From positions 1 through 64,000 of IMG/VR virus record IMGVR_UViG_3300043418_000114: a DNA stretch of 64,000 bases, one strand, 5' to 3'. The notes beneath the pieces were generated by a model. That model was not told where the DNA came from, did not search any database, and was given only the letters and a program-made list of their open reading frames with translations. Positions within the stretch are counted from its first letter, which is position 1. Each line of letters opens with the position of its first letter. The position numbers and the translations under genes are program-made. Of this stretch, positions 2,215 through 59,162 are shown piece after piece.

Positions 2215-2799
2215 ATGGATTTAATCGTAGCATTTCCATCAGGTGCGTCTGGTAGGTTTATCACTAGTATTATTACATGGCTATTGTATGATATCCAAAC
2301 TAGTGTAACCTACCATACTCATAATTCAGTTCACAACTTAGGACACGAATCTGCAAACAGTTGGATCGCAGACAAAACAGTATCAGACTTACATGATAGT
2401 AAAGTATATGAGACTTTAGAATTCGTCGGTAGTTTGCCACATCGTATCTTTTGGACACATGCATTTCCAGATATCAATGTCATACACAGTCGATTGCCAA
2501 ATGCAAAGATAGTAATCATTACTTTCACGGAATCCGACATTGAAGAAATCTCAGTCAACAGTAAGTATAAGAATGACTTACCATTTCCACCTGAAATAGA
2601 TCACAAATTCAATCGTAACAACGTGCATACTGCACACAACACATTGATAATTCCCTATCGGGAAATCTTGAATATAAGAACTTTATCAGTACTTGCCAAC
2701 TTCATTGGCAAACAATCCAATCATATCGTAGCCCACAACTATCAAACATACATTGATGGTCAATCACAATTCTTATTTGCACTTAAATCCAAAATATGA
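2215..2799 (+). CDS. hypothetical protein, possibly sulfotransferase-like P-loop fold
   Basis: N-terminal IVAFPSGASGRF resembles VIYPGACGGNH of 18892; fold is inference. Confidence 0.55.
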   Translation: MDLIVAFPSGASGRFITSIITWLLYDIQTSVTYHTHNSVHNLGHESANSWIADKTVSDLHDSKVYETLEFVGSLPHRIFWTHAFPDINVIHSRLPNAKIVIITFTESDIEEISVNSKYKNDLPFPPEIDHKFNRNNVHTAHNTLIIPYREILNIRTLSVLANFIGKQSNHIVAHNYQTYIDGQSQFLFALKSKI

Positions 2800-2805
2800 T
2801 ATACT
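2777..2805 (+). promoter_or_regulatory. sigma70-type promoter
   Basis: TTGCAC-N17-TATACT. Confidence 0.65.
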
Positions 2806-2811
2806 TTGCTC

Positions 2812-3066
2812 ATGCAAATATCTTCATCACTTGACTGGAATTCAATCGGCGAAAAACTGCGTGTGCAGATGAACAAGATCGGTTATAACGCCGACCTGCA
2901 AAAGCTATTCTGGAATATCGATGCAATGGTTGTCGAGTTGAGCAAACTCGAAGTCGAAGCCAGACGTATTCGTAAAATGGAATATACTGCAAGCAAAGTT
3001 GAAGATATTAACCAAGCAATAAAACGACTCGAACAACTTATCATGGTTGGGATGTTAATGAAATGA
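2812..3066 (+). CDS. hypothetical helical protein
   Basis: ATG 6 nt after the -10 box; ATGA overlap with next gene. Confidence 0.7.
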   Translation: MQISSSLDWNSIGEKLRVQMNKIGYNADLQKLFWNIDAMVVELSKLEVEARRIRKMEYTASKVEDINQAIKRLEQLIMVGMLMK

Positions 3067-3584
3067 AAACAGTTCTCGAACACTTGAAAGACAGACACCT
3101 CAATCTTGAGTTGCATCGTCCTACGGTCGATGAGGTCGAGCGTGTCGCTACATTCTTCCTGTACAACTTAAGTGGTCAAGTTGTTGGTTATCAACAGTAT
3201 CGTCCTGAAGGCGAGAAAAAGCCTAACAACAATCCAAAAGAAGGCAAGTACTTTACTTACAGAAAACAACCTACTCTTGCAGTTTGGGGTGTTGAAAGTT
3301 TGCACCTGACTCCCCATGTTGTATTTGTATGTGAAGGTGTATTCGACGCCGCACGATTGACAAGTAAAGGAGTTAGTGCATTGGCTGTATTGAGCAACAA
3401 CACTGGTTGGGATTTGCGTAACTGGTTGTTTATGCTGAATCGTAAGGTTGTTGCAGTATGCGATAATGATGATGCAGGACGTAAACTTGCAAAGTTCGGT
3501 GATGTTGCAGTCTTTTGTGAAGATCACGACTTAGGTGATAGCACTGATGAATTCGTAAACAATTTGGTAGCGAGATTTGTATGA
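3063..3584 (+). CDS. standalone TOPRIM-domain protein (primase-like)
   Basis: VFVCEGVFDA and VAVCDNDDAG TOPRIM motifs; no zinc-binding domain. Confidence 0.8.
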   Translation: MKTVLEHLKDRHLNLELHRPTVDEVERVATFFLYNLSGQVVGYQQYRPEGEKKPNNNPKEGKYFTYRKQPTLAVWGVESLHLTPHVVFVCEGVFDAARLTSKGVSALAVLSNNTGWDLRNWLFMLNRKVVAVCDNDDAGRKLAKFGDVAVFCEDHDLGDSTDEFVNNLVARFV

Positions 3585-3976
3585 AACTGACTAAACATAG
3601 TAAGAACAAACTGCTCAGGTCTTTTGAACAATATAGTGTGCCTCAAGAATACGCAGATCCATTAATAAACTACCTAGTATATGGGTTCAATCCTGGTAGC
3701 TTCTGGACAGCGGTACTTGCTAATGACTTTTTGGATGCAATGGCTAAATCACATCCAGCAAACAATATTAATGCTCTCAAGAATGTAGGTTGCTGGATCA
3801 TTAACGAAATGCCATGCAAAGCATACGGTTCACGTGAAAAGGTTAAAGAGTGGACAGAACTCAGTGAAGATGTTCGTCGATCATATTTGGTAGAAAAGAA
3901 TCTGATTCATACTGAACAAGATGAAATCGTTTTGATTCTCAAAGATGTGCCAACACATGAACCTCACTTGTGGTAA
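3581..3976 (+). CDS. hypothetical phage protein
   Basis: 131 aa, ATGA coupled. Confidence 0.7.
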   Translation: MKLTKHSKNKLLRSFEQYSVPQEYADPLINYLVYGFNPGSFWTAVLANDFLDAMAKSHPANNINALKNVGCWIINEMPCKAYGSREKVKEWTELSEDVRRSYLVEKNLIHTEQDEIVLILKDVPTHEPHLW

Positions 3977-3980
3977 TTAT

Positions 3981-4220
3981 ATGATGTTAATGTGTGATTT
4001 GACCTATCAAGGATTGTATGGCAATCTAACATATGATCAGGACGCATACATCGTCAGGGTTTATAGAGTAAGTGACATTGTAGATTATGGTCATCTGGTT
4101 GGAAAGGTAAAGTTTCCTTCGCCAATATACTATATGTCTTTTGGTAACGGTGTACAAGCTGAGGATCGGTTGCTCGAATTGTTAGAAAAACCTGCATGGA
4201 CTTTGTTGAAATACGGTTGA
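3981..4220 (+). CDS. hypothetical protein
   Basis: fills gap up to next promoter. Confidence 0.5.
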   Translation: MMLMCDLTYQGLYGNLTYDQDAYIVRVYRVSDIVDYGHLVGKVKFPSPIYYMSFGNGVQAEDRLLELLEKPAWTLLKYG

Positions 4221-35226: not shown

Positions 35227-35493
35227 ATGTCTAAATCTCGCACATACTACACAGTGGAAACTCTTTCATTGCGAAAGTTCTCTTACTCCGATGATCATTG
35301 GATAATGAGTGGTGTAGGTCCTGGTGGCAAGACTATTGAGGAAGCACGTGACCGTGTCAAGAAAGACATGGAAAGAATTGGCATGAACCGACTGCATGAT
35401 GTGAAATTCAGAATCACAAAAACAGTTGAGATTGAGGAAACTGCCGAAGAAATTCTGGGTAACGAAGCCTCATTTTTCATGTTAAAGGCTTGA
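35227..35493 (+). CDS. hypothetical protein
   Basis: AAGGA RBS; 88 aa. Confidence 0.7.
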   Translation: MSKSRTYYTVETLSLRKFSYSDDHWIMSGVGPGGKTIEEARDRVKKDMERIGMNRLHDVKFRITKTVEIEETAEEILGNEASFFMLKA

Positions 35494-35518
35494 CAATAAA
35501 TCTCTAGTTTGATACACT
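35490..35518 (+). promoter_or_regulatory. sigma70-type promoter
   Basis: TTGACA-N17-TACACT. Confidence 0.8.
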
Positions 35519-35539
35519 ACAGATAAATAAAGAAGCAGA

Positions 35540-35582
35540 GCGATAGACGCCGAGCAGACAATTCTTCTAAAGGAGCTTTAGA
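35540..35582 (+). promoter_or_regulatory. candidate cis-regulatory leader RNA, copy 1
   Basis: GCG-ATAGA-CGC then TTCTAAAG-GAG-CTTTAGAA hairpin covering RBS up to the start codon. Confidence 0.6.
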
Positions 35583-35912
35583 ATGTCAAAAGTAATCACA
35601 GTCTTTGAAATCGAAGACGAAATCAAACAACGTAAACAAGAGATAGCCGACCTCGAGGCAAAACTTGAACTGGCTAAACTTGATTCGCCAGAAGAACAAC
35701 TCGCCAAATCCCTACATGGAATGCTTTGCACATGGAATCACACCGATGGCTGTGGCTGGTTCTATGAATTCAAAAACAAAAAAGACGACTGGTCTGGTCA
35801 TGCACACGGCGAGTATATGAAGAAAGCCCGCAACCTGATGCATATCTGCAACAAAGAAGGCATTGCAGTTGACAAAGCACTTGAAATGTACAAACTGGTG
35901 CGAGGTTATTAA
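35583..35912 (+). CDS. hypothetical protein with His/Cys motif
   Basis: LHGMLCTWNHTDGCGWFYE. Confidence 0.75.
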   Translation: MSKVITVFEIEDEIKQRKQEIADLEAKLELAKLDSPEEQLAKSLHGMLCTWNHTDGCGWFYEFKNKKDDWSGHAHGEYMKKARNLMHICNKEGIAVDKALEMYKLVRGY

Positions 35913-36277
35913 TGCACAATCGTGAACAACTATGGTATTCCGCTGACGGTCGAAGCGTGAAGATTAAGGACATGACAATTGGCCATCTGGTCAATGTCAT
36001 CAATTGGGTCAGTGATAACAAAGACTCATATCCACTGTCCACTCTTGATGTGATGATTGCCGAAGCAGAATATCGCCAACTCACCCTGTTTGCAGAAGCC
36101 AAGGCATACCCACAAGTTATCAACAATCGTTGGGTACTGATTGACCCTAAAACAGGCAAGAAGGGAATTATTCCCCCACCAAAAGAATACCTTGATAGTG
36201 TCAAGGACAATGTGGCTTATCAGAAAATGAGTCAGAATACTCAAATCAAAAGAGCCAAACGAAGGAATATTGCTTGA
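35912..36277 (+). CDS. hypothetical protein
   Basis: WYSADGRSVKIKDMTIGHLVNVI. Confidence 0.7.
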   Translation: MHNREQLWYSADGRSVKIKDMTIGHLVNVINWVSDNKDSYPLSTLDVMIAEAEYRQLTLFAEAKAYPQVINNRWVLIDPKTGKKGIIPPPKEYLDSVKDNVAYQKMSQNTQIKRAKRRNIA

Positions 36278-36302
36278 CCTTTAATAGGAATGGCACTATA
36301 AT
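36274..36302 (+). promoter_or_regulatory. sigma70-type promoter
   Basis: TTGACC-N17-TATAAT. Confidence 0.85.
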
Positions 36303-36315
36303 AGAACCATAGCAA

Positions 36316-36357
36316 GCGATAGACGCAAGCGACATATAACTAGAAAGGATTTTTCTA
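36316..36357 (+). promoter_or_regulatory. candidate cis-regulatory leader RNA, copy 2
   Basis: GCG-ATAGA-CGC then TAGAAA-GGATT-TTTCTA hairpin covering RBS and the A of ATG. Confidence 0.6.
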
Positions 36358-37376
36358 TGTCAAAAGAATACGGAACCCTAGTCCTCATCGGACGTTTTCA
36401 ACCCCTGCACAATGCTCACCTTGAGATTATCAAACGTGCAACTGCCTTAACTGACCAACTGATCATAATCACTGGTTCAGCCGCACAACCTCGCACTTAC
36501 AAAAACCCGTTCACAAGCGATGAACGTGCAAGAATGATCAAGTCTGCAACCAGTGGCTTGGCTATGAGAGTGCATGTTGAAGAAAACATTGACACTATCT
36601 ACAATGATCAAGCATGGGCAGTGCGTGTGCAAGGCATTGTTAGTAAGTATCGCATCCTCGGCACAAAGACTGCCGTCATCGGCCACAAGAAAGACGAAAG
36701 TAGTTTCTACTTGGATATGTTTCCTCAATGGGAATACGTTGATGTGGAAGAAATCGAACCACTCAGTGCTGTGAACATTCGTGACTTGTATTTCAAGCGT
36801 GATTGCAACATGAAATTCATTCGTGGTGTTGTGCCTGAAACTACATTTGATTTCTTGACCACATTCAAAGACACACCTGAGTACGAGCAAATCATTCGTG
36901 AACGTGAGTTTGTTGAAACATACAAAAAGCAATACTCTAGTTTGCCTTACCCTCCAATCTTCTCTACTGCCGATGCTGTAGTGATTCAGAGTGGTCACGT
37001 ACTGATGATTAAGCGCCGTAGTGAACCAGGCAAAGGTCTGTGGGCACTGCCAGGTGGCTATGTCAATGCATACACTGACAAGTCAGTAGAAGATGCCGCC
37101 ATTCGTGAACTGCGTGAAGAAACCATGATCAAAGTTCCTGCACCAGTGTTGCGTGGTAACATTGTTGACAATCGTGTGTTTGATGCAGTTGATCGTTCAC
37201 CCCGTGGTCGTATCATCACACACTGTTTCAAGATTGTGTTGCCTGATGGTGAACTGCCTAAAGTAAAAGGCAGTGATGACGCTGAAAAAGCACGTTGGGT
37301 TCCTATCGCAGAGGTCAAGTCGGAAGAATGTTTCGAAGATCACTACGATATGGTCATGTGGGCAGTTGGAGCATAA
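36357..37376 (+). CDS. nadM: bifunctional NMN adenylyltransferase / Nudix ADP-ribose pyrophosphatase
   Basis: IGRFQPLHNAH, IITGSA, KNPFTSDER; Nudix box PGG...EDAAIRELREET; GSDDAEKARW. Confidence 0.93.
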   Translation: MSKEYGTLVLIGRFQPLHNAHLEIIKRATALTDQLIIITGSAAQPRTYKNPFTSDERARMIKSATSGLAMRVHVEENIDTIYNDQAWAVRVQGIVSKYRILGTKTAVIGHKKDESSFYLDMFPQWEYVDVEEIEPLSAVNIRDLYFKRDCNMKFIRGVVPETTFDFLTTFKDTPEYEQIIREREFVETYKKQYSSLPYPPIFSTADAVVIQSGHVLMIKRRSEPGKGLWALPGGYVNAYTDKSVEDAAIRELREETMIKVPAPVLRGNIVDNRVFDAVDRSPRGRIITHCFKIVLPDGELPKVKGSDDAEKARWVPIAEVKSEECFEDHYDMVMWAVGA

Positions 37377-37377
37377 T

Positions 37378-37587
37378 ATGCACAAGAGCAACTACCAACC
37401 CAAGCGTAGTCAACAACTCTTTCTAGCTGAACAAGTTAGAATCAGGGTGTTTAACGCTACAATGGATCAGATTATTGTGCATCATGTGTTGGAAGATACT
37501 CCAACCAGACTGTATCTGCAAATTGAACGCCGTGAAACAAGCCCATTCGGCTATGAAAAGATTTACTTTGAGCGAGTGGAGTTGTAA
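37378..37587 (+). CDS. hypothetical protein
   Basis: GGAG RBS; 69 aa. Confidence 0.55.
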   Translation: MHKSNYQPKRSQQLFLAEQVRIRVFNATMDQIIVHHVLEDTPTRLYLQIERRETSPFGYEKIYFERVEL

Positions 37588-37588
37588 T

Positions 37589-37786
37589 ATGGTACGAGTT
37601 GTTAAAACAGAACCACATCCAAGTGTTGTCAAGGAAGTGATTTGCAGAAACTGTGGAGCTACATTGGAATATGTACCCGCAGATATTAAAAAAGAAGTTC
37701 ACAGGGATTACGGTGGCGGTAGTGACACATACTATCACATCGTTTGTCCACCATGTGGTGATAAAGTTTCAGTAAAGGGGTATTGA
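37589..37786 (+). CDS. small zinc-ribbon protein
   Basis: CRNCG...CPPCG. Confidence 0.7.
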   Translation: MVRVVKTEPHPSVVKEVICRNCGATLEYVPADIKKEVHRDYGGGSDTYYHIVCPPCGDKVSVKGY

Positions 37787-37787
37787 T

Positions 37788-37976
37788 ATGACTACACAAC
37801 AATACAAACGATTAGAAGATGGCCCAATGGATGATATTGACGCTACTATCTTTAGTGGTGATACTTTTCATAATCGTGAAAATATCAAAGCCTTTCGTGA
37901 CATGATGGCACGTTGGGAACGTGGCTTACAAGAAGCCGAAGCTATTGTAACAGAAATGGAAAAAGAAAATGCTTAA
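37788..37976 (+). CDS. hypothetical protein
   Basis: 62 aa in operon. Confidence 0.6.
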   Translation: MTTQQYKRLEDGPMDDIDATIFSGDTFHNRENIKAFRDMMARWERGLQEAEAIVTEMEKENA

Positions 37977-38490
37977 ACATACAAAAGGTAATCTACTCGA
38001 CCTAGCAGAAGCAGGCGAGTTCGATATTGTCGTTCAGGGCTGTAATTGCTTTAACGCAATGGGTGGTGGCATTGCCCGAGAGATTGCAGAACGTTATCCT
38101 TATGCGGCTCAAATTGACAATGAGACTAAACGAGGTGACTACATGAAGCTTGGCACATGGACAGAAAGCGAAGCCGGAGATTACTTTGATACTGTCACCT
38201 ATTCAAGAAACAATAAGTTTCAATTTGGTGATCCGAAGAGATTCACCATTATCAACGCCTATACACAATACAGTGTGTCTCGTGGTTTTGATGTGTTTGA
38301 GTATGTTGCATTTGAATTGATTTTGCAGAAACTCATTCATGAATATGGTGACAAGCGTATCGGATTGCCTTACATTGGCATGGGTCTTGCAGGCGGTGAC
38401 AAGGAAACTATCATTGGAATGATTGAAGCCTTTGCTCATGGTGTCGCAAGTAAAGGTGGCACTGTAACTTTGGTAGAGTTTGGAGGTTAA
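37969..38490 (+). CDS. macrodomain (Appr-1-p processing / ADP-ribosylhydrolase)
   Basis: KGNLLD, VQGCNCFNAMGGGIA, INAYTQ, LPYIGMGLAGG. Confidence 0.88.
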   Translation: MLKHTKGNLLDLAEAGEFDIVVQGCNCFNAMGGGIAREIAERYPYAAQIDNETKRGDYMKLGTWTESEAGDYFDTVTYSRNNKFQFGDPKRFTIINAYTQYSVSRGFDVFEYVAFELILQKLIHEYGDKRIGLPYIGMGLAGGDKETIIGMIEAFAHGVASKGGTVTLVEFGG

Positions 38491-38491
38491 T

Positions 38492-39442
38492 ATGTGGGAT
38501 AAAATTGGAATTTTTGAAGATGAAAAAGAACATGTTAAGAAGTATGTTTTCGAGAAAGATGATATCGCGGTCGAATCTGTACTATATCGGTACCCAACTT
38601 ATAGTGAACGCACTGTTCTTTGCATTAGTACCATGTGTGGTTGTCCTATGGGCTGTCGTTTCTGTGGTACAGGTGATTACTACGTTCGTAATCTCACCGC
38701 TGATGAAATTGTGGGACAAGCTGAGTACATTCTTGACACGCAAATAGACGGACTGGATCCAGCTAAGATTGGCAAGTTGCAAATCATGGTAATGAGCATG
38801 GGTGAGCCTGCACTGAATAAGAATTTGGAGCAAGCATTTGAAACTCTTTATGCGAAGTACCCTAACGCCGCACTGCTGATTAGCTCCAGTGGTCCTAAGG
38901 TTAGTTATGTTTGGATTCGTAACATGAGTGTTCGTATCCCTACTGTTGGGTTGCAGTTTAGTATTCACGAATCTACCGACGAGGCTCGTGATAAACTTAT
39001 TCCATTCGATAAGAAACTCAATCTAAAAGAGATTGCCGACATTGGCACACAATGGTTCTTAGACACTGGTCGTAAGCCATACTTTAACTATTGCGCTCAT
39101 GAAGGCAATAACACTGATGCAGACGTACAACGTATCAATGCATTGTTTAAACCAGAAATCTGGGAAGCAACGGTGTCCGTGATTTGTGAACGTGATAGCC
39201 ATGCAGTTGCAACTAACAATAAGCAACGTGACTTGGCAATTGACTTTGGCAACAAACTCGTTGAACAAGGTTATAATGTCAGAGTATTCGACCCTGCAGG
39301 ACAAGATACAATTGGTGGCGGTTGCGGTCAATTGTGGTATGTGCAAGATTGGATGAAAGATCATCCTGAGCATGTAAAGCCATCTGTAGGCTGTGGCTTG
39401 CAGAAAGTACACACACCTAAGGAGTGGAATCTATGCGTATGA
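38492..39442 (+). CDS. rlmN: RlmN/Cfr-family radical SAM RNA methyltransferase-like protein
   Basis: LCISTMCGCPMGCRFC, MSMGEP, FSIH, GGGCGQL. Confidence 0.8.
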   Translation: MWDKIGIFEDEKEHVKKYVFEKDDIAVESVLYRYPTYSERTVLCISTMCGCPMGCRFCGTGDYYVRNLTADEIVGQAEYILDTQIDGLDPAKIGKLQIMVMSMGEPALNKNLEQAFETLYAKYPNAALLISSSGPKVSYVWIRNMSVRIPTVGLQFSIHESTDEARDKLIPFDKKLNLKEIADIGTQWFLDTGRKPYFNYCAHEGNNTDADVQRINALFKPEIWEATVSVICERDSHAVATNNKQRDLAIDFGNKLVEQGYNVRVFDPAGQDTIGGGCGQLWYVQDWMKDHPEHVKPSVGCGLQKVHTPKEWNLCV

Positions 39443-39897
39443 TTAAAGCACCAGAGCAAGTGCCAGAGGATGGCATTCGTGTGTTTCTTGCTGGCTCAAT
39501 TGAAATGGGAGTTGCTGAACAATGGCAAGAGCGTTTGGCAAAACTTTTAGAAGACACTGATTGTATTCTAGTGAATCCTCGGCGTGATGATTGGGATTCA
39601 TCATGGGTACAATCTATTGACAATCCACAATTCAATGAACAAGTAAATTGGGAATTACACGGATTAGAAGATGCACACATTGTTGTGTTTTATTTTGATC
39701 CAAATACAAAAAGTCCAATTACACTAATGGAATTGGGATACGTAGCGGCAATGCCATGTGTTGATGTTGTAGTTTGTTGTCCAGAAGGATTCTGGCGCAA
39801 AGGCAATATTGATATCATGAGCAAGCGTTGTGGACTCGAAACGGCAAAAACTTTAGAAGAAGTTGCCGAATTCGTGAGGAATCAGTTGACTCAATAA
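39433..39897 (+). CDS. nucleoside 2-deoxyribosyltransferase-like protein
   Basis: VFLAGSI, NPRRDDW, QVNWEL, SPITLMELG. Confidence 0.8.
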   Translation: MRMIKAPEQVPEDGIRVFLAGSIEMGVAEQWQERLAKLLEDTDCILVNPRRDDWDSSWVQSIDNPQFNEQVNWELHGLEDAHIVVFYFDPNTKSPITLMELGYVAAMPCVDVVVCCPEGFWRKGNIDIMSKRCGLETAKTLEEVAEFVRNQLTQ

Positions 39898-39914
39898 TTC
39901 TGTTGTGTTATACT
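39886..39914 (+). promoter_or_regulatory. sigma70-type promoter
   Basis: TTGACT-N17-TATACT. Confidence 0.8.
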
Positions 39915-39924
39915 TGTGACAAGT

Positions 39925-39968
39925 CCTAGAGATAGACTTTAGGCAATTTAACTTTAAAGGAACTTTAA
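39925..39968 (+). promoter_or_regulatory. candidate cis-regulatory leader RNA, copy 3
   Basis: CCTAGAG-ATAGA-CTTTAGG then TTTAAAG-GAA-CTTTAAA hairpin covering RBS. Confidence 0.6.
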
Positions 39969-39969
39969 A

Positions 39970-41373
39970 ATGAAACTCGCAAAAAACATTCTGTTGAACA
40001 CAGACAGCTACAAAGTTAGCATGTTCAAACAATATCCAGCTGGCACTACAGGTGTATTCAGCTACATTGAAGCCCGCGGTGGCAAATACAATGAAACAGT
40101 CTTCTTCGGACTGCAAGCCTTTATTAAGGAATACTTACTTGACCCTATCACTCAAGCCGACATTGATATTGCAGATGAGATCCTTACTGCTCACGGAGAG
40201 CCCTTCAACCGAGAAGGATGGGAATACATTCTATCAGCACACGGTGGTTACCTTCCCGTCGTTATTCGTGCTGTTCCTGAAGGCACAGTTGTGCCTGTTA
40301 AAAATGTTCTGGCAACAATTGAAAATACTGATCCGAATGCGTATTGGTTGACAACTTGGCTCGAAACTGCCTTGCTTCGCGCAATCTGGTATCCTACCAC
40401 AGTTGCTACACAAAGCAAGACCATCAAGACAATCATTCAATCTTACTTGGAGAAATCAGGTGACCCTACTACAATTAGCTTTAAGTTGCACGATTTCGGT
40501 GCTCGTGGTGTGTCTAGCCTTGAATCAGCGGCTATCGGAGGTGCGGCACACTTGGTTAACTTCATGGGTAGCGATACTATTTCTGGTGTTCTGTATGCTC
40601 GGGAATTTTATAACGCTGGGGTTGCGGGCTTCTCTATCCCTGCCGCGGAGCACAGTACAGTTACTAGTTGGGGACGAGACAACGAAGTAAAAGCATATAG
40701 CAACATGGTTCGTCAATTTGGTATCCCTGGTGCAATTCTCGCTGTGGTATCTGACAGTTACGATATCTACAAAGCATGTGAAATGTGGGGTAGTGGCGAA
40801 TTGAAACAACAAGTTGTTGATTCGGGTGCTACTGTCGTGATTCGTCCTGATAGTGGTGATCCAGCAGAAGTGTTGCCAAAAATGTTGCGTATCTTGAGCG
40901 AAAAGTTCGGGTATACAACTAATGACAAAGGCTACAAAGTCTTGAACAACGTTCGTGTGATCTGGGGTGATGGTATCAATCAGTTGAGCATCCAAACAAT
41001 CTTCCGTACTGTTGTTGATCTTGGTGGCTATAGTGCTGACAACCTTGCATTCGGCATGGGTGGTGCCTTATTGCAACAACTTGACCGCGACACTCAGAAA
41101 TGGGCTATGAAGTGTTCAAGTGCTTGCATTGATGGTGAGTGGGTCGATGTATTCAAAGATCCAATCACTGATAGTGGCAAAACTAGTAAGAAAGGTCGTG
41201 TGACTCTGTGGACTAATAGTGGTGGTGAATACGCTACAAGCGTGAATGCTCCAACTGGCTGGACTGACAAAGGCATCGGCGGCTGGACTGAGGTACTCGA
41301 AGAAGTATACCGCGACGGCAAATTGGTCAAAGAAATTGACTTCGAAACTGTTCGCGCCAACAGCAACAAATAA
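39970..41373 (+). CDS. nadV: nicotinamide phosphoribosyltransferase
   Basis: TDSYKVS, LHDFGARG, SIPAAEHS, VSDSYD, IRPDSGDP, IWGDG, FGMGGALLQ, SKKG. Confidence 0.95.
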   Translation: MKLAKNILLNTDSYKVSMFKQYPAGTTGVFSYIEARGGKYNETVFFGLQAFIKEYLLDPITQADIDIADEILTAHGEPFNREGWEYILSAHGGYLPVVIRAVPEGTVVPVKNVLATIENTDPNAYWLTTWLETALLRAIWYPTTVATQSKTIKTIIQSYLEKSGDPTTISFKLHDFGARGVSSLESAAIGGAAHLVNFMGSDTISGVLYAREFYNAGVAGFSIPAAEHSTVTSWGRDNEVKAYSNMVRQFGIPGAILAVVSDSYDIYKACEMWGSGELKQQVVDSGATVVIRPDSGDPAEVLPKMLRILSEKFGYTTNDKGYKVLNNVRVIWGDGINQLSIQTIFRTVVDLGGYSADNLAFGMGGALLQQLDRDTQKWAMKCSSACIDGEWVDVFKDPITDSGKTSKKGRVTLWTNSGGEYATSVNAPTGWTDKGIGGWTEVLEEVYRDGKLVKEIDFETVRANSNK

Positions 41374-41400
41374 GAAATTGGGCATTTTGCCCATTTCTTT
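41372..41400 (+). terminator. probable terminator hairpin
   Basis: AAGAAATTGGGCA/TGCCCATTTCTT. Confidence 0.6.
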
Positions 41401-58607: not shown

Positions 58608-59162
58608 ATGAGTACTCATGTAATGATAGACATTGAATCACTGCACACCTCACCAGACTGTGTGATTCTTACAATTGGTGCGGTATTGTTTGATCCATGT
58701 GGACAAGGCATGATCGACAAGATTGAAATCAGACCAACAATCGACGATCAAACAGAAGTTTATGATCGTAAAATTAATGATGACACGATTGCATGGTGGG
58801 GCAGACAGTCACCAGAAGCCATCGAGGAAGCACTAGGAGACCGAGACCGCGTTTCTTTTCCAGAAGCAATGGCGCAGTTACACAAGTTCTGCTGGAATCG
58901 TGCTAAGAGTCCCTGGAGCAACGGAGCAACATTCGACATTATCGTAATGGAGAATGCATTTCGTCAACTAGGCATGGTACCACCATGGAACTTCTGGGAT
59001 ATTCGTGACACGCGCACATTGTATGATGTTACTGGCGTTAAATTAAAAGACGGCGGACACGTTACTAGTCACAAAGCGGTAGAAGATGCAGAGCGCCAAG
59101 CAATTGTTGTACAACAAGGCTACATGAAATTAATGAAAGCAGGATTGGTCGCGCCGCGATGA
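58608..59162 (+). CDS. DEDDh 3'-5' exonuclease (DexA/Rv2179c-like)
   Basis: VMIDIESL, WSNGATFD, RDTRT, HKAVEDA. Confidence 0.88.
   Translation: MSTHVMIDIESLHTSPDCVILTIGAVLFDPCGQGMIDKIEIRPTIDDQTEVYDRKINDDTIAWWGRQSPEAIEEALGDRDRVSFPEAMAQLHKFCWNRAKSPWSNGATFDIIVMENAFRQLGMVPPWNFWDIRDTRTLYDVTGVKLKDGGHVTSHKAVEDAERQAIVVQQGYMKLMKAGLVAPR

Follow-up and report, generated by a model that had tools for sequence, protein, structure and literature searches.

Do the three short leaders that precede genes of NAD salvage in a 64-kb DNA stretch (the whole stretch analysed, hereafter the window) represent copies of one regulatory RNA and, if so, what might it respond to? The first-pass annotation described a shared two-part design, with a stem closing an ATAGA loop followed by a hairpin over the Shine-Dalgarno sequence, and inferred a translational regulon governed either by a ligand-sensing RNA or by an RNA-binding protein, possibly the Nudix enzyme itself. 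We found that the leaders are real copies of an apparently undescribed, strongly covarying two-hairpin element located in front of nadM-Nudix, nadV and, in one phage lineage, nadA. It occurs in many phages and also in Proteobacteria, and most likely controls translation of these genes, although this is inferred from comparative data without experimental evidence.

Three leaders within the window

The window holds exactly three copies of the element, at 35535-35587, 36312-36361 and 39925-39969, each consisting of a hairpin H1 (variable stem, invariant G-AUAGA-C) followed by a hairpin H2 over the Shine-Dalgarno sequence, which abuts or includes the ATG. The relevant features are as follows.

35490..35518 (+), promoter-like site P1, TTGACA-17-TACACT, TG-extended
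35535..35555 (+), leader 1, H1; core GCG-AUAGA-CGC at 35540-35550, with an outer GC/GC pair across an internal loop
35557..35587 (+), leader 1, H2; the upper stem TTCTAAAG/CTTTAGAA at 35565-35583 buries AAGGAG and the A of the ATG, and the lower stem pairs GACA with UGUC of AUG-UCA
35583..35912 (+), 109-aa protein without a Pfam match, phrog_12218 (unknown function), first gene of the operon that runs into nadM
35912..36277 (+), 121-aa protein of unknown function
36274..36302 (+), promoter-like site P2, TTGACC-17-TATAAT
36312..36330 (+), leader 2, H1, GC-AA-GCG AUAGA CGC-AA-GC; core GCG-ATAGA-CGC at 36316-36326
36331..36361 (+), leader 2, H2; upper stem UAGAAA-GGAUU-UUUCUA at 36341-36357, lower stem pairing GACA with UGUC and directly abutting H1
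36357..37376 (+), nadM-Nudix, a bifunctional NMN adenylyltransferase / ADP-ribose pyrophosphatase
37378..39897 (+), genes co-transcribed between nadM and nadV: three small ORFs, one of them a zinc ribbon, then a 173-aa macro-like protein (phrog_335; weak match to ADP-ribose 1''-phosphate phosphatase), a radical-SAM protein and a nucleoside 2-deoxyribosyltransferase-like protein
39886..39914 (+), promoter-like site P3, TTGACT-17-TATACT, TG-extended
39925..39943 (+), leader 3, H1, CCUAGAG-AUAGA-CUUUAGG
39953..39969 (+), leader 3, H2, UUUAAAG-GAA-CUUUAAA, ending one base before the ATG
39970..41373 (+), nadV (nicotinamide phosphoribosyltransferase, NAMPT)
41379..41393 (+), terminator-like hairpin with a T run after nadV

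Minimum-free-energy folding gave H1 plus H2 for all three leaders. A covariance model built from related loci and run over the whole window with filters off found exactly these three, with scores of 66.9, 47.1 and 28.9 bits (E 1.5e-11, 1.6e-7 and 7e-4), whereas the next best hit had E = 4, and this despite the presence of about 20 strong promoters in the window. Similarly, an H2-type hairpin over the ribosome-binding site at a plausible gene start occurs only at these three starts in the window. The bare heptamer GATAGAC is only mildly enriched, with 13 found against 6.5 expected, and the other 10 copies lack the hairpin-and-leader context. The downstream genes were identified as NadM-Nudix (Pfam CTP_transf_like + NUDIX; PDB 2QJO, E 8e-84) and NAMPT (NAMPT_N + NAPRTase).

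Distribution and covariation of the element

The first-pass annotation held that its reading would fail if the motif were absent upstream of homologous genes or showed no covariation, and it passed both tests. About 130 related IMG/VR loci carry the element upstream of nadM-Nudix operons and nadV, with compensatory changes in both stems. Among 132 distinct H1 windows chosen without any stem criterion, pair 12-20 reads AU 56, CG 50, GC 16 and UA 4, with 2 unpaired, and the covariation score is 0.465, against 0.135 when shuffled and at most 0.152 when slid. For H2, 72 distinct windows are 91% paired, three pairs have no unpaired cell and 3-5 pair types each, and the score is 0.656 against 0.133. 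The bacterial set scores 0.503 against 0.152, although the bacterial and class-B alignments were selected with a stem filter and their percent-paired values are thus inflated. At reliably paired positions G·U outnumbers A·C 63 to 5, so the sense RNA folds. The element is always on the sense strand, between the promoter or the upstream stop codon and the AUG.

H1 is a 7-10 bp hairpin of free sequence, sometimes with an internal loop, that carries a fixed pentaloop A-Y-A-G-A closed by G-C. The 5' arm and loop of H2 hold the Shine-Dalgarno sequence (invariant AAGGA), and its 3' arm ends at or includes the AUG. The H1 loop lies 26-29 nt upstream of the Shine-Dalgarno sequence in most phage copies and 29-33 nt in bacterial nadM leaders. 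No T run follows H1 in any lineage and a terminator scan does not call it, contrary to what would be required of an intrinsic terminator or attenuator.

In viral loci the downstream genes are nadV (73), nadM (55) and small first genes of nadM operons, while divergent phages place the element before NAMPT, NadM and NadA. It occurs in the cultured phages LucasX, RTH11 and DSS3P8, and cultured phage-host pairs that carry it are Xanthomonas citri with LucasX and Ruegeria pomeroyi with DSS3P8. The element is not a phage invention, as it also precedes nadM and/or nadV in Xanthomonadales, Caulobacter, some Burkholderiales and other Proteobacteria, with loop AUAGA or ACAGA. Interestingly, a phage subclade with a deeply divergent NadM-Nudix uses the same architecture with a different loop, G-GYRGU-C (covariation score 0.777 against 0.227), and the two loop classes fall in the two deep NadM clades. 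In total, more than 200 distinct natural variants are known. No paper describing the element was found, nor was any regulator of NAD salvage in Xanthomonadales, Caulobacter and the other bacteria concerned found in the literature searched. NAD depletion is a major anti-phage strategy and NAMPT plus NMNAT is a known phage route to rebuild NAD; this element would be the first post-transcriptional control described for that route. Phages appear to have the nadM-nadV cassette together with its control RNA, and have copied the module in front of nadV, nadA and various small first genes. The shared element also shows a regulatory RNA travelling with a metabolic cassette between cells and viruses.

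What the element may respond to

A translational role, as the first-pass annotation proposed, is consistent with the position of H2 over the Shine-Dalgarno sequence and the AUG, with the occurrence of the element in intercistronic positions and with the fixed spacing from the H1 loop to the Shine-Dalgarno sequence. Since H1 can lie between cistrons, it does not depend on the 5' end of the transcript. We infer that H2 throttles translation initiation and that H1 is the specificity module, recruiting a trans-acting factor that reports NAD status and stabilises or blocks the neighbouring ribosome-binding site, most simply as negative feedback, although the direction of regulation is unknown. The reading that we favor, with roughly even confidence, is a translational operator whose H1 loop binds a protein, with NadM-Nudix, encoded in the same cassette, as the leading candidate. 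A protein is suggested because only the loop and its closing pair are conserved in H1, the linker is unalignable between lineages, and no loop-linker or loop-loop complementarity is conserved.

Support for NadM-Nudix as the partner is correlative. None of 29 bacterial nadV loci without an adjacent nadM has H1; Xanthomonadales-type H2 survives in loci L280, L285 and L312, and L301 keeps a decayed relic. Only NadM and NadV are shared between the bacterial and phage contexts, and the loop class follows the NadM clade. However, there is no experimental or structural evidence that NadM-Nudix binds RNA, and both co-occurrence with nadM and the match of loop class to NadM clade could simply reflect common descent of one cassette, as related sequences share labels. 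Moreover, about 13 Variovorax-type bacterial loci and several cultured phages (ACP17, Moby, DLP_6, phiM12, KVP40, XacN1 and RsoM2USA) have NadM-Nudix but no H1, and a further locus, L331, has H1 before nadV with NrtR next door rather than NadM.

A minimal riboswitch, in which H1, perhaps together with H2, directly binds NAD+, NMN, nicotinamide, ADP-ribose or PRPP and changes the accessibility of the Shine-Dalgarno sequence and AUG inside H2, is unlikely but not excluded. The element is tied to one pathway across distant bacteria and phages, as expected when the sensed factor is universal, the ribosome-binding site is enclosed in a hairpin, L331 has the element without an adjacent nadM, and guanidine-II would seem to offer a precedent for a very small hairpin riboswitch with an invariant loop. 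On the other hand, only about 5 loop nucleotides plus one closing pair are conserved, there is no conserved junction, bulge or pseudoknot, the linker sequence is free, the loops of H1 and H2 are not complementary, and no alternative, mutually exclusive pairing is conserved. The different loops (AYAGA versus GYRGU) in clades that carry different NadM types are not expected for one ligand pocket, and the absence of H1 from the bacterial nadV loci lacking an adjacent nadM also argues against this reading. Were it nevertheless correct, the element would be a new and exceptionally small riboswitch class shared by Proteobacteria and their phages, sensing, for example, nicotinamide or ADP-ribose, the products of NAD-cleaving defence systems, so that phages switch on NAD reconstitution when the host burns its NAD.

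Somewhat less likely still, though also open, is a factor-independent structure, in which H2 simply sets a low translation rate and H1 acts as an mRNA stabiliser, a processing signal, a ribosome standby platform or an intercistronic insulator. H2-like hairpins do persist at nadM and nadV start sites in many phages and bacteria that lack H1, and H1 often lies just after the upstream stop codon. A purely structural hairpin would, however, need neither an invariant loop across AT-rich phages and GC-rich bacteria, nor restriction to NAD genes, nor a fixed distance to the Shine-Dalgarno sequence.

Three other explanations are very improbable. A DNA operator for a transcription factor such as NrtR or another Nudix-related regulator, or a DNA hairpin, could be considered because the site is an inverted repeat close to promoters, NrtR controls the same genes in other bacteria (PMC2330246) and L331 has NrtR next to nadV; yet the arms covary freely while the non-palindromic centre is fixed, the excess of G·U over A·C points to RNA, many copies lie between cistrons far from any promoter, the GT-N7-AC core of the NrtR box, a 21-bp palindrome, is absent, and in L331, the only locus next to which NrtR was found, a separate 27-bp palindrome overlaps the promoter. 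The 109-aa protein at 35583, which the first-pass annotation named as a possible binding partner, shares the leader and sits first in the operon, but neither it nor another accessory phage protein of the island is likely to be the dedicated regulator; the 109-aa protein cannot be the general one, given that homologues occur in only about 14 of 159 viral loci, other loci have unrelated small proteins at that position, and no accessory gene of the island occurs in any bacterial locus carrying the motif. A mobile promoter-plus-stem-loop cassette that only mediates gene shuffling, like the PeSL elements of T4-type phages, would fit the occurrence of the module, including the first codons AUG-UCA-AAA, in front of unrelated first genes and the presence of another repeated early-promoter cassette in the window, but many copies are intercistronic and have no promoter, the element is present in bacterial chromosomes, and the stems covary rather than being conserved as recombination substrates.

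Comparison with known regulatory systems

The NAD+ riboswitches (nadA motif, class I; pnuC motif, class II) are likewise cis-acting leader RNAs in front of NAD synthesis or uptake genes, and class II also involves the Shine-Dalgarno sequence. These RNAs have bulged-stem or pseudoknot aptamers with many conserved nucleotides and control nadA or pnuC in other phyla, whereas the present element has a single conserved pentaloop and controls nadM and nadV. A search of the whole window against Rfam 15 gave 0 hits at gathering scores, and at E up to 10 window positions 35480-40000 and positions 2700-4100 of locus L281 gave only unrelated chance hits that do not overlap the element. No pseudoknot or alternative pairing of the class II type was apparent, as the linker between H1 and H2 is not conserved and no complementarity between the H1 loop and downstream sequence is shared across lineages. 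The guanidine-II (mini-ykkC) riboswitch also has very small hairpins with covarying stems and an invariant loop next to the ribosome-binding site, but its two identical ACGR tetraloops kiss around the ligand; here the loops are AYAGA (or GYRGU) and GGANN, only H1 has a special loop, and the loop of H2 is the Shine-Dalgarno sequence.

NrtR, NiaR and NadR control the same target genes (nadV, nadM, nadA) for the same purpose of NAD homeostasis, but they are DNA-binding repressors with palindromic operators (PMC2330246), while this element is an RNA structure. Lambda N-boxB is a short hairpin with a conserved pentaloop whose loop classes are specific to phage lineages, and the rare variant GUAGA would fit its GNR(N)A pattern; boxB, however, acts in transcription antitermination together with boxA, whereas here there is no boxA, the main loop is AYAGA and the context is the ribosome-binding site.

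A conserved loop on a covarying stem adjacent to the ribosome-binding site is what is expected of a protein-binding translational operator. In the phage operators of this kind (the MS2/PP7 coat protein-replicase hairpin and the T4 gp43 and RegA operators), a hairpin at or beside the Shine-Dalgarno sequence and AUG is recognised through loop bases, the stems are free to covary, and different loop classes are paired with different proteins. In the present element the partner is unknown, the recognition hairpin (H1) is separate from the hairpin over the ribosome-binding site (H2), and the element is also bacterial and tied to a metabolic pathway. In the E. coli thrS operator (ThrRS autoregulation) and other enzyme-mRNA feedback loops, an enzyme binds hairpin loops upstream of its own ribosome-binding site and competes with the ribosome; there is no tRNA mimicry here (no U33-type anticodon loop), but this is the model that we propose for NadM-Nudix.

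The NAD-related island and its three leaders

The region 35490-41393 is an NAD-related island on the + strand of a 364-kb IMG/VR contig. Locus L081, one of the loci recovered from IMG/VR, is 100% identical to it, whereas no close cultured relative was found by megablast or blastn. Three sigma-70-like promoters precede three genes, namely those encoding a 109-aa protein of unknown function, NadM-Nudix (Pfam CTP_transf_like + NUDIX; closest structure 2QJO, E 8e-84) and NAMPT/NadV. Three small ORFs and three larger genes lie between nadM and nadV.

35490 (+): sigma-70-like promoter
36274 (+): sigma-70-like promoter
39886 (+): sigma-70-like promoter
37969-38490, 38492-39442 and 39433-39897 (+): a macro-like protein (weak match to ADP-ribose 1''-phosphate phosphatase), a radical-SAM protein and a nucleoside 2-deoxyribosyltransferase-like protein

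The last of these recurs next to NAMPT in two other loci, L200 (a GC-rich IMG/VR contig) and L277, and the three proteins may provide further NAD or ADP-ribose handling functions. L277 (DAIDKD010000215.1, labelled as a Bacillaceae MAG) is a 5.6-kb contig with the phage-type leader and a phage-type Nuc_deoxyri_tr2-nadV arrangement. Its NadV is 66% identical to that of the window, and it is probably a phage contig binned into a bacterial MAG.

The first-pass annotation, which had described in each leader a stem closing an ATAGA loop (H1) and a hairpin burying the Shine-Dalgarno sequence next to the start codon (H2), was correct on both the hairpins and their positions, and minimum-free-energy folds reproduce them (-13.3, -10.0 and -9.3 kcal/mol). 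In the two nadM-type leaders, GACA after H1 pairs with UGUC of AUG-UCA, and H2 therefore extends down to within 0-1 nt of H1 and fully encloses the start codon. Interestingly, unrelated first genes (the p109, p118 and p125 families, and nadM) all start AUG-UCA-AAA (Met-Ser-Lys), at 35583-35592 and 36357-36366 in the window and in L017, L038, L064 and other loci. The first codons therefore seem to be part of the RNA module, which looks as if it is copied as a unit. Phage nadM-type leaders of both loop classes (see below) also share (A/C)UAAAUAAA between the -10 hexamer and H1 (window 35519-35534; L001, L007, L026 and others). In some loci this reads TATAAATA, like a T4-type late promoter, and could be a second promoter or a 5' landing site.

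A covariance model (R1) built from related loci and run over all 64 kb with filters off returns exactly the three leaders (E 1.5e-11, 1.6e-7 and 7e-4), the next hit having E = 4. A hairpin of the H2 type at a plausible gene start likewise occurs only at these three starts. A GATAGAC at 58625-58631 has a 5-bp flanking stem, but it lies inside a coding region just after a start at about 58607, has no H2 and no covariance-model hit, and is taken as chance. The other strong early promoters of the window share a different, short, CA-rich leader with no hairpin. Perfect TTGACA-17/18-TATAAT promoters at 4217, 29214, 29874, 30543, 34429, 42552 and 44248 (+ strand) have a conserved spacer (…AAAT…TTTGG…) and a short CA-rich leader (CAUCAACAACACA…), and form a second repeated early-promoter cassette, distinct from the NAD leaders.

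Distribution and covariation in phages and bacteria

Searches of IMG/VR with NadM and NadV gave 159 loci at 72-87% protein identity, of which about 130 carry G-ATAGA-C hairpins within 100 nt upstream of nadM, nadV or both. Across these loci GATAGAC is flanked by 7 or more contiguous pairs 68 times, whereas six control heptamers of the same composition reached that length once in total. The genes directly downstream are nadV (73 distinct cases), nadM (55), and four families of small proteins that are alternative first genes of nadM operons. Many nadV copies have no promoter of their own, and in those the nadM stop codon lies inside or just before H1. The element can therefore lie between cistrons, and it does not depend on the 5' end of the transcript.

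Covariation of H1 was assessed on 132 distinct 31-nt windows, chosen only for GATAGAC plus a downstream Shine-Dalgarno sequence, ATG and ORF, with no stem filter. The pair next to the closing pair reads AU 56, CG 50, GC 16 and UA 4, with 2 unpaired, and the covariation score is 0.465, against 0.135 in shuffles (0 of 500 reach it) and at most 0.152 when the partner is slid. About half the copies, the nadM type, have a small internal loop in mid-stem, while others have perfect 9-10 bp stems. For H2, 72 distinct windows anchored on GGA are 91% paired; three pairs have no unpaired cell and 3-5 pair types each, and the score is 0.656 against 0.133. A-A-G-G-A and the first U of the 3' arm are invariant. 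The distance from the G of GATAGAC to the GG of the Shine-Dalgarno sequence is 26-29 nt in 122 of 144 distinct leaders, although the linker sequence is unalignable between lineages.

The element is wider than this phage group. An unbiased enumeration of the best upstream hairpin was too noisy to use, because internal loops break contiguous stems, and was useful only after filtering for both stems. A pattern scan of IMG/VR filtered in this way found the element in divergent contigs: before NAMPT in L162, L181 and L237, between NadM and NAMPT in L200, and before NadA (quinolinate synthase, PF02445), NadM and NAMPT in L263/L363. Among cultured phages, Xanthomonas phage vB_XciM_LucasX carries it before LUCX_150 and LUCX_151, Xanthomonas phage RTH11 carries it with the loop GUAGA in its nadV copy, and Roseobacter phage DSS3P8 carries it before gp110 and gp112.

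The element is also bacterial. In 80 bacterial nadV loci fetched from GTDB species representatives, exact G-AUAGA-C hairpins occur in 24 and the one-base variant G-ACAGA-C in about 15 more. These hairpins stand upstream of nadV and/or nadM in Lysobacter, Xanthomonas, Stenotrophomonas, Pseudoxanthomonas, Dyella, Caulobacter, Ralstonia flaminis and Paraburkholderia phenazinium, and also occur in Methylococcaceae, Thiotrichaceae and other MAGs. One genome can have ACAGA at nadM and AUAGA at nadV, so the two loops are equivalent. Given that model R1, built from AT-rich phage copies, recovers few GC-rich bacterial copies, the latter were collected by pattern plus stem criteria; their stems covary as well (67 windows, score 0.503 against 0.152), but the percent paired is inflated by this selection. 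None of the accessory phage genes of the island occurs in the bacterial loci, and only NadM and NadV are common to both contexts.

A G-GUUGA-C hairpin in Variovorax-type loci is not a further loop class. It is the hairpin around the nadM stop codon, in which the TGA sits in the loop of a conserved GC-rich hairpin (GGCCGCG-GUUGA-CGCGGCC and variants), and it occurs in Xanthomonadales (L309:3892-3922, L349:3922-3952, L335, L313) and in Variovorax-type operons (L284, L291, L294 and others, near 3930-3960). In L309 and L349 it is found alongside H1, and it is therefore a separate feature.

Several observations indicate RNA, not DNA. At positions that are almost always paired, G·U occurs 63 times and A·C 5 times, and the non-palindromic centre is fixed while the arms change freely. 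The element is always on the sense strand, and many copies are far from any promoter. The published NrtR box, a 21-bp palindrome with a GT-N7-AC core, is different (PMC2330246). In L331 (3879-3985), a Pseudomonadales MAG locus with NrtR divergent from nadV and no adjacent nadM, a separate 27-bp palindrome (AATATATTGGC-N5-GCCACTATATT) overlaps the promoter, while H1 and H2 lie in the 5' UTR. This looks like dual transcriptional and post-transcriptional control.

A second loop class and the inferred mechanism

A phage subclade has a nadM that is only about 32% identical to that of the window but is still CTP_transf_like + NUDIX. It has the same layout of promoter, A/U-rich start, H1, short linker, H2 and nadM (L117:4929-4980, L109:4923-4975, L131:4958-5015 and 12 more loci), but its H1 loop is G-GUAGU-C, G-GCAGU-C or G-GUGGU-C (G-GYRGU-C, class B), and its stems covary (15 sequences, score 0.777 against 0.227). 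In these phages nadV has only H2. In a NadM tree, class B falls in one deep clade and class A, with the loop AYAGA, in the other. The class-A clade includes 35 of 35 members of one bacterial clade, while its 13-member Variovorax-type sister clade has none.

These data show a conserved RNA structure, specific to NAD genes, that encloses the ribosome-binding site, and any mechanism is inferred from it. With moderate confidence, we favor a protein-bound operator. Conservation in H1 is confined to five loop bases and one closing pair; no junction, pseudoknot or alternative pairing is conserved; and the loop class changes with the NadM type. Moreover, none of 29 bacterial nadV loci that lack an adjacent nadM has H1, although several still keep the H2 of the lineage and one keeps a decayed relic. 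NadV is a weaker candidate than NadM, because NadV alone does not retain H1. However, these correlations may reflect common descent, L331 has H1 without an adjacent nadM, and RNA binding by this enzyme has, to our knowledge, never been reported. Several NadM-Nudix genes also have no H1, namely those of the Variovorax-type loci and of the cultured phages ACP17, Moby, DLP_6, phiM12, KVP40, XacN1 and RsoM2USA. These phages still have an H2-like hairpin with GGAG in the loop at the nadM and/or nadV start, and RsoM2USA nadM has a different upstream hairpin (GGUCAGCA-GCCGAA-UGCUGACC).

A minimal riboswitch is unlikely but is kept alive by the pathway specificity across very distant hosts. A factor-independent role appears still more doubtful, yet is kept alive by the wide persistence of H2 alone. 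A pseudoknot between the AUAGA loop and the linker or H2 was rejected, as YUAU stretches occur in many AT-rich nadM leaders but are absent from nadV leaders and from GC-rich bacteria. Kissing between the H1 and H2 loops was rejected because they are not complementary, and mimicry of a tRNA anticodon loop because the loop is closed by G-C and lacks U33. As for a CsrA-type site, H2 does have GGA in a loop, but H1 has AGA rather than GGA, and the distribution is NAD-specific.

Relation to described RNA families

Searches of Rfam 15 at gathering and at permissive thresholds gave nothing relevant, and no description of the motif was found in the literature searched, which did not cover subscription journals. 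We therefore treat the element as a new class of cis-regulatory leader RNA. It is the same kind of thing as riboswitches and translational operators, but, within the Rfam and literature searches, it is not a member of any described family.
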